A program made the translations under genes and the position numbers. A DNA stretch of 64,000 nucleotides from IMG/VR virus record IMGVR_UViG_3300035661_000001, positions 186,001-250,000 of that record; one strand, 5' to 3'. How positions within the stretch are numbered: position 1 is the stretch's first letter; the number at the start of each line of letters is the position of its first letter. Of this stretch, positions 2,343 through 57,427 are shown in pieces. A model generated the notes under the pieces. That model was given only the letters and a program-made list of their open reading frames with translations, was not told the origin of the DNA and did no database searches.

Positions 2343-3287
2343 ATGTTAAAAGTTATACTTACGGTCGGCTGCCCAGCAAGTGGTAAATCCACGTGGGCAA
2401 AAGCAGAAATTGCTAAAGACCCTATTAATTGGGTCAGGATCAATAATGATGATCTTAGAAGCATGACCAACGGAACCGTATTTTCTGCTGAATACGAAAA
2501 ATTAATTACGGATACTCGTAATTTTCTTATCAAAGAAGCATTGAAAAGAAATAAGAATGTTATTATTGATAACGTTAATGCTAACAAAAGACATTGGCAA
2601 GATGTTTGTAAATTAGCAGAAGAAGCAAATAGAGATATTCAAGTTTTTGAAAAACCATTCTATGCACCACTTGACGAATTAATTGCTAGAGATTCTCAAA
2701 GAGAAGGTAAAGCGAAAGTCGGCGAAGTAGTCATCAAGAAATTTTTCAAAGATCTTGGAAAAGATCAATTCAAATTCCAAAATACTAGAACGGAAATCTT
2801 TAAGAAAAAAGATAGAATTGCTGATAATAATTTCGTTGCAGCTAAACAAAATGAAAAACTTGAGCGAGCTTATTTAGTAGATCTTGACGGCACAGTAGCC
2901 GATCTATCTCACAGAAGCTCTCCATATGCCGCTAATGAATGTTTATATGATAGCCCAATAAAACCAGTTATAGAGACAATTATCTCTTTATATAAAACCG
3001 GAAGTAAAATTATTTTTATGTCTGGTAGAAGCAATCAGTTTAAAGATTTATCCGAACAATGGATTAATGAATATATTCAAATTGACGGCACTCCAATAAA
3101 ATATGAATTATTCATGCGTTCTGCTGGAGATCAGCGCGGCGACCAAATTATCAAAAAAGAATTATTTGAGAAGCATGTTAAAAATAATTATTATACTATT
3201 GCTGTTTTTGATGACCGCCCAAAAGTAATAAGAATGTGGCGAAGTATTGGTTTAACTGTTTTTCAATTAAATGATGTAGAATTTTAA
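2343..3287 (+). CDS. pseT: Polynucleotide 5'-kinase/3'-phosphatase (T4 PseT-like)
   Basis: Kinase P-loop GCPASGKST with RINND motif; HAD phosphatase DLDGT, MSGR and FDDR motifs. Confidence 0.92.
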   Translation: MLKVILTVGCPASGKSTWAKAEIAKDPINWVRINNDDLRSMTNGTVFSAEYEKLITDTRNFLIKEALKRNKNVIIDNVNANKRHWQDVCKLAEEANRDIQVFEKPFYAPLDELIARDSQREGKAKVGEVVIKKFFKDLGKDQFKFQNTRTEIFKKKDRIADNNFVAAKQNEKLERAYLVDLDGTVADLSHRSSPYAANECLYDSPIKPVIETIISLYKTGSKIIFMSGRSNQFKDLSEQWINEYIQIDGTPIKYELFMRSAGDQRGDQIIKKELFEKHVKNNYYTIAVFDDRPKVIRMWRSIGLTVFQLNDVEF

Positions 3288-20035: not shown

Positions 20036-20764
20036 TTATTTTTTACCAAACAACCCGGCAAAAAATTGAATAACGCTTGCCCAGGGAGATAGCGCTACAG
20101 GCATAACAACCACTGTAGAAGGCGGCTGGCTCGCTGCTGACGGGGCTTCCACAATAGGTACAACGACAGGTTCCTCAACAGGCGTGGACGCCTCTACCGG
20201 CTCAGTAGTTGTCAAGCCTATGACAATCTTTTCAAAAGAATCATCTTTCATAAACTTATTGAAATATATTCCTACAGCTTTAGCATAATCAGCTTCAGGT
20301 GCAGTATAATATCCAGCCAATTTCAATAAATGCGCGAAGCCCGTTGGACTCCCATCTTCAACAGCTTGCCAAGCCTTCTTGTATCTTTTGTTTTTTAAAA
20401 AGTCTACTTGAAAAGCAAATCCATCAGCGAGTGTAGGAAATGATCTAAACCAAGTAGCTTGATGTGGTGGTTGAAAAATTACTTTTTTTCCTCCAAGGAT
20501 TTCCCAAACATTATTTAACATCATGTATTGAACACCTTCATCAGCAGTCGTATCTTTGCTAGGAATATATTTAACATTTCCAATGTTATTATTCCACATA
20601 GATCCTGTGGAACCAGTTTCAATAGCTGTTTGAGCATAAAGAACAGCAATGGATGCTTTTTGAGGGAACACCCCAAATTGTTTTTTCCAGCCTTCCACAA
20701 AACCTTTGATTAAATCATAATTGCTATAAGTTGTTCTTACTGTTGGTACTAATTGAGCCGACAT
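20036..20764 (-). CDS. Putative peptidoglycan hydrolase (GH73/FlgJ-like glucosaminidase), candidate endolysin
   Basis: AQTAIETG, NNIGNVK, FRSFPT, AGYYTA; GGAGG SD; Pro/Val/Glu linker and amphipathic C-terminus. Confidence 0.65.
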   Translation of the reverse strand: MSAQLVPTVRTTYSNYDLIKGFVEGWKKQFGVFPQKASIAVLYAQTAIETGSTGSMWNNNIGNVKYIPSKDTTADEGVQYMMLNNVWEILGGKKVIFQPPHQATWFRSFPTLADGFAFQVDFLKNKRYKKAWQAVEDGSPTGFAHLLKLAGYYTAPEADYAKAVGIYFNKFMKDDSFEKIVIGLTTTEPVEASTPVEEPVVVPIVEAPSAASQPPSTVVVMPVALSPWASVIQFFAGLFGKK

Positions 20765-20831
20765 AATTGCCTCCTGAGCCTATGCATTTAAAATGATAAG
20801 GTTATATATAATTGTTCATAAAGGAGATAAT

Positions 20832-21170
20832 ATGACGTAGGTTAAATCTGGTGATAAATTGTATGTTGTAACTCGTAATGATTTAAATCATGGGCAACAA
20901 GCTTCACAAATATGTCACGCTATGAGACAGTTCATTTCAGAAAATTCTGAAGTTGAGAATAACTGGTTTTGTAATTCTAATTATATTTGTTTATTATCTG
21001 TGCCTTCGGAAGAAGAATTAAAAACTTTAATATTCAAAGCTATTAACAAAAATATAAAATATTCATTATTTAAAGAACCTGATTTAAATGATTCTATCAC
21101 TGCCGTTTGTTTTGAACCCAGTAAAATAACTAAAAGACTATTGTCAAAATTACAATTAGCATTTCAGTAA
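20832..21170 (+). CDS. PTH2-family peptidyl-tRNA hydrolase-like protein with an in-frame TAG at codon 3
   Basis: AAGGAG SD, then ATG ACG TAG GTT AAA TCT GGT GAT AAA TTG in frame with YVVTRNDL..GQQASQICHA...FKEPDL...TA. Confidence 0.75.
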
Positions 21171-21195
21171 TATACTAATACATCTGTATGTTATT

Positions 21196-21924
21196 ATGCC
21201 TTATAAAAGAACTTATACAATTGATCAATTTTACCAAGCAATAAAAGAATCTTTTTTCATGACTGATGCTTTAAGAAAACTAGAGTTAACCGGTGGAAGT
21301 GCACAATCATTCAAACGATTGTTAAATGAATTAAACCCAGATACTTCTCACTGGATTAACCCTCATACGTTAAAAATAAATAATTTAAAAAACATAAAAG
21401 AAATTCCTCTAGAAGATATTTTAGTAAAAGACAGTTCATATGTTTATTCTTCTTTAAAAGAAAAATTAATAAAAAACAAATTGCTTGAATATAAATGCAA
21501 TATTTGTTCTATAAAATCATGGAATAATAAAAATATAGTTTTACAGCTTGATCACATAAACGGTATTCATAATGATAATAGGATAGAAAACCTTAGATTA
21601 TTGTGTCCAAATTGCCATTCACAAACAGATAGTTTTTGTGGTAAATTAAAAAAAGAAAATTTGCCCAAATGTAAATATTGTGTAAATTCTGTTAGAGATA
21701 AACGTGCAAAAACTTGTCAAGCATGTTATTTATCTGGTGATTTTACAAAAATCAGTTGGCCATCAGATAATGAATTAAATGAATTAATATTAAATAATAA
21801 AATTAAAGATGTTGCAAAAATGTTAAATGTTAATGAATCTTCATTAAGATGGCGCCTGAAAAAGAGAAATATAATGATAAGCAAAACGAAAGAAATGATT
21901 AAATCATTTTTGTCCATGTTCTGA
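21196..21924 (+). CDS. HNH endonuclease
   Basis: CNIC, LQLDHINGIHNDNRIENLRLLCPNCHSQT; C-terminal helix-turn-helix. Confidence 0.9.
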   Translation: MPYKRTYTIDQFYQAIKESFFMTDALRKLELTGGSAQSFKRLLNELNPDTSHWINPHTLKINNLKNIKEIPLEDILVKDSSYVYSSLKEKLIKNKLLEYKCNICSIKSWNNKNIVLQLDHINGIHNDNRIENLRLLCPNCHSQTDSFCGKLKKENLPKCKYCVNSVRDKRAKTCQACYLSGDFTKISWPSDNELNELILNNKIKDVAKMLNVNESSLRWRLKKRNIMISKTKEMIKSFLSMF

Positions 21925-56176: not shown

Positions 56177-57427
56177 ATGGAAATAGAGATTAAAGAATTA
56201 GAGTCCTGTAAACTTAACATTGTTTATGTAGCTGATGCGGGTGAGATTTTAGAAAAGCGTGGCGTTGTTATTCAAGCTTTTAAGAAAGCTCCAGTTCCAG
56301 GTTTCAGACCAGGAAAAGGATCAATTGATGCTATTAAATTTCATTATAAAAATCAAATTGAAGAGTCATTAAAACGTGGTTTGGCAGAAGACGCTTATCA
56401 TAACACTCTTTTTGAAAAGAAATTAAAGCCACACGGAGCACCGACTTTCAAAAGCCTTCTTATGGGAGATGGTAAATTCACTTGTGAATTTGATTTATTC
56501 GTAAAACCAGATTTTGAACTAGCTGATTTTAAGAGTTTAAATATCCCAAAACCACATGAAGATATAAGTATCTTAGAATTTTCAGAAAAGCTTTTACAAG
56601 ATTTAAGACACAAATTCGGAGAGACTGCTCCTTATACGGAAAATGATTTTGTACAACAGGGAGATAATGTAATTATAGATTATGTTGGAACTGTTGATGG
56701 AACAAGAGTTGATTCTTTGTGTACCGAAGGTGAAATGTTAACTGTTGGTCAAAGTCAACTGCCTAATTTTGATTCAAGCTTATTGGGCATGACGTTGTCA
56801 GAAACTAGAGAATTCGATTTAGTTGTTCCTGAAAATGGAATGCCATCTTTAGCTGGTAAAACAGTTCATTTTAATGTGACATTGAATATGGGTTCAAAAA
56901 CTGAATTATGTCCATTAGATGATTCATTAGCTGAAAAAATGGGAAAGAAAACTATTCTAGAATTAAGAGAATTAGTTAATGCTGCGGCAAGCGGTAGAGT
57001 GTCTAATATGCTTAAATTGAAAATAAATGAATCAGTTGCTGCTCATTTAGTTAACGATAATTCTTTCGAAGTTCCTAATTGGTTAAGTTTATCAGAAGCT
57101 CAATATTTAGCACACAGTGCTAAATTAGATTGGGTAACTATGAGTGAGTCGGATAAAGAAAAATATCTAGAAATGGCAATTAGAAATGTTAAATTGTCAT
57201 TGGTATTAGATAAAATTAGAGAAACAGAACCAGAAGCCCAATTATCAGATCAAGAAGTATTCAACATAATTAAAGGTAATTTAGTTAAAACACAAAATAG
57301 TAAAGAATCAGTAGATGATATTATTAAAGAGATGAATAGGACCGGCTATTTACAAATAATGTTTTCTAGAATCAAAGACGAATATACGCTAGATTTTGTA
57401 TCGAAAAAAATCAATATCATTGAGTAA
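56177..57427 (+). CDS. tig: Trigger factor
   Basis: Ribosome-binding PGFRPGK, FKBP domain (GD.VIIDYVG...G), C-terminal domain; GAGG SD. Confidence 0.92.
   Translation: MEIEIKELESCKLNIVYVADAGEILEKRGVVIQAFKKAPVPGFRPGKGSIDAIKFHYKNQIEESLKRGLAEDAYHNTLFEKKLKPHGAPTFKSLLMGDGKFTCEFDLFVKPDFELADFKSLNIPKPHEDISILEFSEKLLQDLRHKFGETAPYTENDFVQQGDNVIIDYVGTVDGTRVDSLCTEGEMLTVGQSQLPNFDSSLLGMTLSETREFDLVVPENGMPSLAGKTVHFNVTLNMGSKTELCPLDDSLAEKMGKKTILELRELVNAAASGRVSNMLKLKINESVAAHLVNDNSFEVPNWLSLSEAQYLAHSAKLDWVTMSESDKEKYLEMAIRNVKLSLVLDKIRETEPEAQLSDQEVFNIIKGNLVKTQNSKESVDDIIKEMNRTGYLQIMFSRIKDEYTLDFVSKKINIIE

Follow-up and report, generated by a model that had tools for sequence, protein, structure and literature searches.

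The purpose of the suppressor tRNAs found in many standard-code phages is an acknowledged puzzle. The idea that phage genes can be programmed to depend on phage suppressor tRNAs is not new: phages that use genetic code 15 combine a tRNA(CUA), RF2 and depletion of TAG stops with in-frame TAG codons that are proposed to be suppressor-dependent (10.1101/2021.08.26.457843; PMC9523058). Xanthomonas phage XacN1, a standard-code jumbo phage, contains two tRNA(CUA) genes and a PTH gene, and its authors identified no suppressor target (PMC5852040). In a review of jumbo phages, PTH2 is listed as a ribosome-rescue or tRNA-repair gene, and no link to suppressors is drawn (PMC7824862). In bacteria, the autoregulated RF2 gene, prfB, is a termination-related gene with an early in-frame stop that reports how the stop is handled. 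Lambda bar and other two-codon minigenes have the form SD-ATG-NNN-stop and produce short peptidyl-tRNAs for Pth recycling.

We describe here a PTH2-like gene that shares features with each of these systems. The window, the 64,000-nucleotide stretch of DNA that was analysed, consists of bases 186001-250000 in the record of a 451,956-bp jumbo phage, which has direct terminal repeats and a GC content of 36.5%. Comparison with relatives makes it likely that this gene is suppressor-dependent (amber-gated) and is one half of a two-part module, the other half being a suppressor tRNA.

The PTH2-like locus and its product

On the plus strand of the window, the Shine-Dalgarno (SD) sequence AAGGAG (20821-20826) is followed, after a 5-nt spacer, by the leader ATG-ACG-TAG (20832-20840). 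Read directly, the leader is a start codon, one sense codon and an amber codon. The amber codon (codon 3, 20838-20840) is the proposed tRNA(CUA) target and has a purine, G, right after it at 20841. The frame then continues without a shift through GTT AAA TCT GGT GAT AAA TTG TAT GTT GTA ACT CGT and ends at the TAA at 21168-21170. This ORF of 109 codons plus TAA (20841-21170) holds a PTH2-fold domain, as predicted by Pfam, a PDB profile search, AF2 and Foldseek. The proposed full CDS (20832-21170) would encode 112 residues, including the one encoded by TAG. The TTG at 20859-20861, formerly taken as the start, is the codon of a conserved Leu in the first beta-strand. The original prediction had placed the SD, ATG-ACG-TAG and the PTH2-like ORF in one frame, and the sequence is as it described, with a Pfam PF01981 match at E 1e-9.

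The TAG was checked against reads. Contigs from three public metagenome runs (depth 25-42x) had zero differences from the window over 20600-21400; the runs are from microbial mat and sediment, and the source sample may be among them. A separately assembled 349-kb IMG/VR contig was identical across the leader (161 bases compared, window 20740-20900). Since the three read assemblies and the second contig agree there, the TAG at 20838 is not an assembly or sequencing error. When the whole genome was scanned for an SD-ATG mini-ORF with an in-frame stop and no good downstream ATG, only one of 639 gene-like ORFs had this arrangement, and it was the PTH2-like gene. The SD-ATG-TAG arrangement at this gene is beyond chance. 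The gene is single copy, with no second PTH2-like copy in the phage genome.

The leader motif was also considered as a genome-wide DNA or RNA signal. ATGNNNTAGRTT is not enriched in the phage genome (13 observed, 15.4 expected), its remaining copies fall within genes in other frames, and the chance-level count rules such a signal out. A scan for promoters and terminators found nothing above chance, and the locus, when searched as DNA against the phage collection, returned no match. Directly 3' of the gene, window 21196-21924 (+) holds an HNH-type endonuclease gene (weak Pfam HNH matches). Homing-endonuclease-like ORFs of the GIY-YIG or HNH type recur near the PTH2-like module in other phages, which hints at a mobile region.

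The post-TAG ORF matches Pfam PTH2 over profile positions 2-101 of 115, with 39.1 bits against a cut-off of 23, and the match begins at the Lys just before TTG 20859. The family profile, when searched against the PDB, identified Pth2 chains (2zv3 at E 2e-10). An AF2 model was built from an alignment in which two mycobacteriophage rows were left out. The model had a pLDDT of 97.7, the predicted structure showed the Pth2 alpha/beta fold, and Foldseek gave a TM of 0.74-0.80 to the Pth2 structures 2zv3, 1xty, 1wn2, 3erj and 1q7s. The ORF is under purifying selection, and R12, Q23, H26, W42, E79-P80-D81 and T87 are invariant in the family. In Pth2, the Lys of the G-K motif is catalytically important. 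This Lys is absent here, the aligned residue being Gln in the window protein and Leu, Tyr or Gln in the family. Scores stayed far below the NCBIfam Pth2 equivalog cut-offs (26.5 bits vs 126 for NF003314; 26.2 vs 82 for TIGR00283), and the best PHROG family is one of unknown function. Due to the missing G-K Lys and the sub-cut-off scores, the substrate may not be ordinary peptidyl-tRNA. By profile and model, the protein is predicted to be a Pth2-fold enzyme of a divergent phage-borne subfamily and is a putative hydrolase.

Conservation of the leader and its context

Relatives were collected by scanning IMG/VR with a C-terminal peptide pattern (E-P-D...T). Because the pattern is C-terminal, the homolog set has no N-terminal bias. 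The scan found 279 relatives, and the best 80 were fetched, giving 67 unique proteins. The homolog counts that follow are for viral contigs among these best 80 of 279 relatives, and their rows are not phylogenetically independent. An ATG followed by one to three sense codons and an in-frame TAG was present in 60 of the 67 unique homologs, at 38-59% identity, so the ATG-NNN-TAG that the original prediction proposed to look for in homologs is conserved in this slightly broader form. One sense codon precedes the TAG in 31 of the 60 leaders, two in 16 and three in 13. The identity of these codons is variable: codon 2 may be AAA, AAG, ACA, ACG, AGT or others, and 19 different codons were found directly before the TAG. 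It had been suggested that the phage tRNA-Thr(UGU) could decode the ACG of the leader. Since codon 2 is not conserved and varies freely among homologs, this tRNA is irrelevant.

The huge phages LR756500, LR756501 and LR756504 from a public phage collection, together with a 118-kb viral contig, carry homologs that are 33-48% identical, and all of these start with ATG-NNN-TAG-ATT in frame with the domain. The leader is also present on contigs binned into very different MAGs of up to 64% GC; in the 64%-GC Planctomycetaceae MAG contigs it reads M-K-F-T-TAG-N. The arrangement is found in dozens of diverged relatives and would extend over hundreds of phage lineages, from 23% to 64% GC. In relatives that use an SD, AGGAG or GGAG is positioned at matching spacing before the leader ATG and not before the post-TAG codons, while the remaining phages have A-rich leaders without an SD. 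No conserved RNA structure was predicted around the TAG (0 pairs predicted across 29 sequences; z = -0.63 in the window). By these sequence comparisons, the leader TAG is neither a mutation nor a product of chance.

The same type of leader was seen in cultured phages. In cluster C1 mycobacteriophages (Bixzunavirus), the gene annotated as "peptidyl tRNA hydrolase" is preceded by GAAGGC-ATG-TAG-GTG, with GTG as the annotated start, and a tRNA(cta) is located about 250 nt after it. Myrna-like phages have a GTG-TAG-GTG leader and a tRNA(cta) 180 nt downstream. In XacN1, ATG AAG TAG ACT is in frame upstream of a PTH2-like domain, which is the C-terminal part of a longer frame (L160 964-1500). The XacN1 authors read through annotated amber stops, and a two-codon leader is invisible that way. 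In the mycobacteriophages and in XacN1, a codon that could serve as a start closely follows the TAG. The N-terminal fusion region of the XacN1 protein, about 180 residues, has no Pfam match.

The base that follows the TAG is also conserved. A purine was found at +4 in 60/60 leaders (A 48, G 12; homologs from the best 80 of 279 relatives), compared with 57% of genuine terminal TAGs in the same genomes (binomial p=2e-15 for 60/60 leaders). A +4 purine is a favourable context for amber suppression (PMC6266110). In the work of Bossi, as summarised in that article, a C to A change gave a gain of about 10-fold for supE (PMC6266110).

Alternative start codons are scarce downstream of the TAG. From the TAG through the conserved first-beta-strand Leu, no ATG, GTG or TTG occurs in 52 of the 60 homologs. 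Six homologs, the window gene included, have a TTG after the TAG only at the conserved Leu codon itself, and two have an ATG. At this Leu, the codons are TTA (27), CTT (14), TTG (6), CTA (5), CTC (5) and CTG (2). The codons directly after the TAG include AAC, GGC, GGA, ACT, AGC, ACA and AGA, none of which can initiate. When the ten closest relatives are compared, the stretch from the TAG to the Leu shows synonymous third-position changes under conserved residues, for example Ile ATT/ATC, Gly GGT/GGA/GGC and Lys AAA/AAG, which indicates that it is translated. In the window, codons 20841-20858 evolve as coding sequence.

The original prediction stated that TTG 20859 lacks an SD. This detail has to be qualified, since GGTGAT (20850-20855), located 3 nt upstream, can pair with the 3' end of the 16S rRNA. 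The doubt about the TTG itself was well placed: it is no credible conserved start because GGTGAT makes up the codons of a conserved Gly-Asp. Additional TAGs were found within the domain in several homologs (L014, L004, L080/L082, L106 and L120), where they align with Glu, Asp or Gln or with variable positions. For these internal TAGs, readthrough is the only explanation. Some suppressor-independent initiation may occur, given the TTG at the Leu in six homologs and the ATG past the TAG in two.

Two further observations concern copies of the leader or the gene. In LR756500, the PTH2-like gene is flanked by a 30-nt repeat that includes the leader; a mobile cassette bounded by such a repeat was rejected since the repeat is limited to LR756500 and is absent at four other loci. 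The second copy (L015 1818-1847; ..GTT ATG AAA TAG ATT AA), 80% identical to the leader region, closely follows the stop codon of the PTH2-like gene. No gene comes after this copy, and it probably remains from a duplication. In L007 and L008, a distant PTH2-like copy (~2930-3260) is located between tRNA-Met and tRNA(cta). It has an in-frame TAA and an apparent frameshift near its N-terminus, and it may be decaying or decoded unusually.

Suppressor tRNAs and the genetic code

To look for suppressors, the other phage genomes were fetched whole and their tRNAs were called with ARAGORN. A same-strand tRNA(cta) was present within 4 kb at 51 of the 60 leader-bearing loci, positioned 41-70 nt upstream or 20-3000 nt downstream of the gene. 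Within the same distance, 52/61 TAG-bearing genes and 0/6 TAG-less genes had a tRNA(cta) (Fisher p=5e-5, on rows that are not phylogenetically independent). Since no protein family was shared as a neighbour by more than 12 of the 67 loci, the tRNA(cta) is the one constant partner of the gene. In LR756500, it lies 0.8 kb downstream of the PTH2-like gene. In the 118-kb contig (G001), it lies 0.6 kb downstream and is the only regular tRNA of the contig. LR756501 has two tandem tRNA(cta) genes 2.1 kb downstream, the only tRNAs in 95 kb. In LR756504, a tRNA at c281045-281120, about 100 kb from the gene, has an 8-nt anticodon loop, AUUCUAAC, that contains CUA. The bodies of the tRNA(CUA) genes are very diverse across the linked loci, and most have G1-C72 and lack the three G-C pairs in the anticodon stem.

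One 676-kb genome, G003, has a different stop codon in its leader. This leader, ATG AAA GAA ACA TAA ATT, is homologous to the ATG AAA GAC ACT TAG ATT of its relatives. The genome has 39 Rfam tRNA matches, and the loci examined contain no tRNA(cta) and one lone tRNA(tta), about 19 kb from the PTH2-like gene. With this pairing of a TAA leader and a tRNA(tta), the leader stop co-varies with the suppressor anticodon. At another locus (L095), a tRNA(tta) is paired with a TAG leader; a UUA anticodon can read UAG by wobble. Prevotella phage Lak-B5 (L018) was considered as a second case of covariation. Its tRNA(tta) (856-928) is about 570 nt upstream of the PTH2-like gene, and the PTH2-like frame is preceded by ATG AAT ATC TAA ATT (~1411-1425). 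This case is weak, as there is an ATG four codons later and TAA is very common in the genome, and the pairing may be a coincidence.

Other features of these loci relate to tRNA. In LR756504, ARAGORN called tRNAs with non-standard loops at c136122, c402360 and c461088, and several 6-nt anticodon loops are present. Just upstream of the tRNA(cta) in LR756500 (L015 ~2408-2592), there are apparent tRNA halves about 110 nt apart, the 5' acceptor, D-arm and anticodon stem followed by the T-arm and 3' acceptor; they may belong to a tRNA gene with an intron. In the same phage, a YqeY/GatB-tail-like protein (Pfam YqeY, E 2e-10) is encoded immediately upstream of the PTH2-like gene (L015 1001-1423). This domain is associated with the formation of Gln-tRNA. 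A glutamyl-tRNA amidotransferase has been reported for XacN1 as well.

The phage of the window encodes its tRNA(CUA) outside the window, at genome 80119-80195 (ARAGORN; Rfam tRNA model 48 bits vs threshold 29). At a distance of 126 kb, it is not adjacent to the PTH2-like gene. The tRNA has a weak U1-A72 pair, and its D-arm is nearly identical to that of the phage's own tRNA-Gln. The genes that adjoin it had no Pfam match. A full-length RF2 with SPF and GGQ motifs is also encoded outside the window, at genome 407194-408282 (L010 1423-2511), and scores 402 bits with the prfB model (cut-off 370). This RF2 gene is one uninterrupted ORF that lacks the +1 frameshift site usual in bacterial prfB, and it is also found on a related contig, G002.

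TAG is the terminator of 10 of the 284 long coding-like ORFs in the genome of the window phage. Treating TAG as sense lengthens ORFs in this genome less than treating TGA or TAA as sense, and it barely extends ORFs in four genomes: the window phage (G000), W02, G001 and W03. At about five TAGs, the sequence looks coding both before and after the codon; these sites are ordinary boundaries between genes, with a new Met after the TAG. Among the features of code 15, the tRNA(CUA), RF2 and TAG-stop depletion are present and widespread in-frame TAG is absent. The window phage is not TAG-recoded genome-wide.

Other candidates for amber-interrupted genes in this phage were all ordinary gene boundaries, except for a weak one at genome 388295(-). 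Here (genome 388056-388493 (-), outside the window), two Pro/Ala-rich ORF pieces of 66 and 79 codons are joined by TAG-A, and the second piece has no start codon near its beginning. It may be a weak second candidate for amber readthrough. Elsewhere outside the window (genome ~56278-56330), a 16-nt ribosome-binding and start region is present as a tandem duplicate, gataaggaagaagagc ATG CCG CTT TAG and then ataaggaagaagagc ATG GCG..., which yields a three-codon mini-ORF in frame with the next gene. Release-factor-like genes in LR756504 (L161, ~568.6 kb) and LR756501 (L162, ~359 kb) match the second half of PCRF only. They contain 1-2 in-frame TGA codons, which may be prfB-style frameshift sites, TGA readthrough or decay.

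Proposed mechanism, alternatives and known systems

Suppressor dependence is proposed on the basis of the conserved leader, the +4 context, the absence of alternative starts, the tRNA linkage and the match between stop and anticodon. Amber readthrough had already been put forward as a route to the Pth protein, and it appears to be the most likely one given the conserved TAG, the tRNA(CUA) linkage and the few restart codons. Ribosomes would initiate at the SD-ATG at 20832, read one sense codon and meet the UAG. If charged phage tRNA(CUA) outcompetes host RF1, the UAG would be decoded and the 112-residue Pth2-fold protein would be made, with an extra M-T-X N-terminus in which X is probably Gln. 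If RF1 wins, the dipeptide would be released, or the short peptidyl-tRNA would drop off. Because decoding of the UAG would be contested by tRNA(CUA) and RF1, enzyme output would be set by the suppressor-to-RF1 balance. We infer from these comparisons that the UAG is actually decoded, which residue is inserted and what job the enzyme does.

A stop at codons 2-5 would keep failure cheap, with a di- to tetrapeptide by-product and no truncated protein, and this may be the reason for its early position. Timing alone is unlikely to be the reason for the TAG, since the gene and the tRNA are usually adjacent and probably co-transcribed. In our preferred reading, the enzyme would hydrolyse tRNA esters (peptidyl- or N-blocked aminoacyl-tRNA) that are by-products of running the suppressor, and its supply would be scaled to suppressor activity. 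The original prediction described the gene as a feedback sensor. It was right in that the gene would report readthrough, but the trigger would be the phage tRNA(CUA) and not RF1 depletion or compromised termination. It is doubtful that the tRNA(CUA) and the amber-gated PTH2-like gene together make up a feedback circuit complete in itself and a first step toward the evolution of code 15 in phages. In such a circuit, the enzyme would act on the aminoacyl or peptidyl ester of the suppressor or on the products of failed suppression. It would hold readthrough at a set level in a standard-code host, as a governor comparable to RF2 autoregulation. Feedback of the enzyme on the suppressor itself is possible but unsupported, and it is unlikely that a 12-kDa Pth2 fold recognises the very diverse tRNA(CUA) bodies.

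The leader could instead be a bar-like minigene. The enzyme would then arise from spontaneous readthrough, or from reinitiation under impaired RF1 function or termination, and no dedicated suppressor would be involved. In favour of this, very short peptidyl-tRNAs readily drop off, the locus has a two-codon SD-ATG-NNN-stop ORF and the gene product is Pth-like. However, the analogy to lambda bar, which the original prediction had drawn, breaks down on the 1-3 sense codons of variable identity: leader codons and length vary, hence no specific tRNA would be sequestered. The model also leaves the tRNA(CUA) linkage and the stop/anticodon match unexplained. Reinitiation, likewise proposed earlier, is contradicted by the 52/60 homologs without a restart codon before the first beta-strand and by post-TAG codons such as AAC and GGC, and it cannot bypass the TAGs inside the domain. 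We therefore regard the bar-like model as quite unlikely. If translation began at TTG 20859, as annotated, ATG-ACG-TAG would be an upstream mini-ORF that is either incidental or no more than inhibitory. In favour of this start, the TTG shares the frame, it has the 16S-complementary GGTGAT 3 nt upstream, and the Pfam domain begins nearby. Yet 53/60 homologs have a Leu codon other than TTG (TTA/CTT/CTA/CTC/CTG) at this position, GGTGAT itself encodes the conserved Gly-Asp, and the six upstream codons are conserved at the amino-acid level. A start at the TTG would drop conserved residues modelled at pLDDT 96, which makes it very unlikely.

Use of code 15 throughout the phage, in which TAG would be an ordinary Gln codon with no regulatory meaning, has in its favour that the phage encodes tRNA(CUA) and RF2 and that TAG is rare as a stop, features of recoded phages (10.1101/2021.08.26.457843). 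It is highly improbable in view of the ORFs that barely lengthen in G000, W02, G001 and W03 and the roughly five TAGs that are all ordinary gene boundaries. Genome-wide recoding would also leave unexplained why TAG is fixed at codons 3-5 of one gene across lineages of 38-59% identity. The tRNA(CUA) could also be of the initiator type, in which case translation would begin on the UAG. Amber initiator tRNAs can be functional in E. coli, and the weak U1-A72 pair in the tRNA of the window phage would fit this role. The conserved ATG and SD spacing point to the ATG instead, most linked tRNA(CUA) genes are of the G1-C72 type without the three anticodon-stem G-C pairs, and several homologs have internal TAGs, leaving initiation at UAG extremely improbable. 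Finally, a single in-frame stop at codon 3 could result from a recent nonsense mutation (pseudogene) or an assembly error. The probability of this is close to negligible, as the sequence is identical in three read assemblies and a second contig, the leader is kept in 60/67 homologs, purifying selection acts on the ORF and the pLDDT of the model is 97.7.

With suppressor dependence as the favoured explanation, the suppressor tRNAs of standard-code phages would gain a first conserved target gene, one that is usually adjacent and has a stop matching the anticodon. It also corrects a systematic annotation error, in which PTH2-like genes are called with truncated or wrong starts. With its three elements, an ATG, a short spacer and a TAG plus purine, the leader suggests a natural sensor of amber codons. 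Peptidyl-tRNA hydrolase biology would thereby be linked to the early evolution of genetic-code change in viruses. Since cultured systems are included (XacN1; cluster C mycobacteriophages on M. smegmatis), the proposal is directly testable. Full-text searches of the non-subscription literature found no earlier description of the tRNA linkage or the leader, and the hydrolase was not mentioned in the recoding literature searched, including the preprint 10.1101/2021.08.26.457843. What appears to be new is a conserved two-part module in otherwise standard-code phages, with a fixed leader on a Pth2-like gene.

The module differs from each of the known systems. In contrast to the code-15 phages, the genome here is otherwise standard-code. 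The TAG belongs to one specific gene family, in which it always falls among codons 2-5, the purine at +4 is fixed and the gene is physically linked to the tRNA gene. In prfB, the ribosome shifts into the +1 frame at UGA, and RF2 itself acts directly at the codon that is sensed, whereas the PTH2-like leader keeps its frame and the sensed quantity would be suppressor tRNA versus RF1. Minigenes such as bar are stand-alone and depend on particular codons and tRNAs. The PTH2-like leader runs in frame into a downstream gene, its one to three sense codons vary, and a suppressor tRNA accompanies it. Archaeal and eukaryotic Pth2 proteins (MJ0051, 2zv3; SsoPth2, 1xty; human Bit1/PTRH2, 1q7s) share the predicted fold at TM 0.74-0.80 and a significant profile match, and the phage family keeps their Gln, His, acidic and Thr positions. 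Unlike Pth2, the phage family lacks the G-K Lys, has its own invariant E-P-D motif, falls far short of the equivalog cut-offs and is tied to suppressor tRNAs. XacN1 has both parts of the module, but the leader ATG AAG TAG ACT upstream of its PTH gene was not considered by the authors of that study (PMC5852040).
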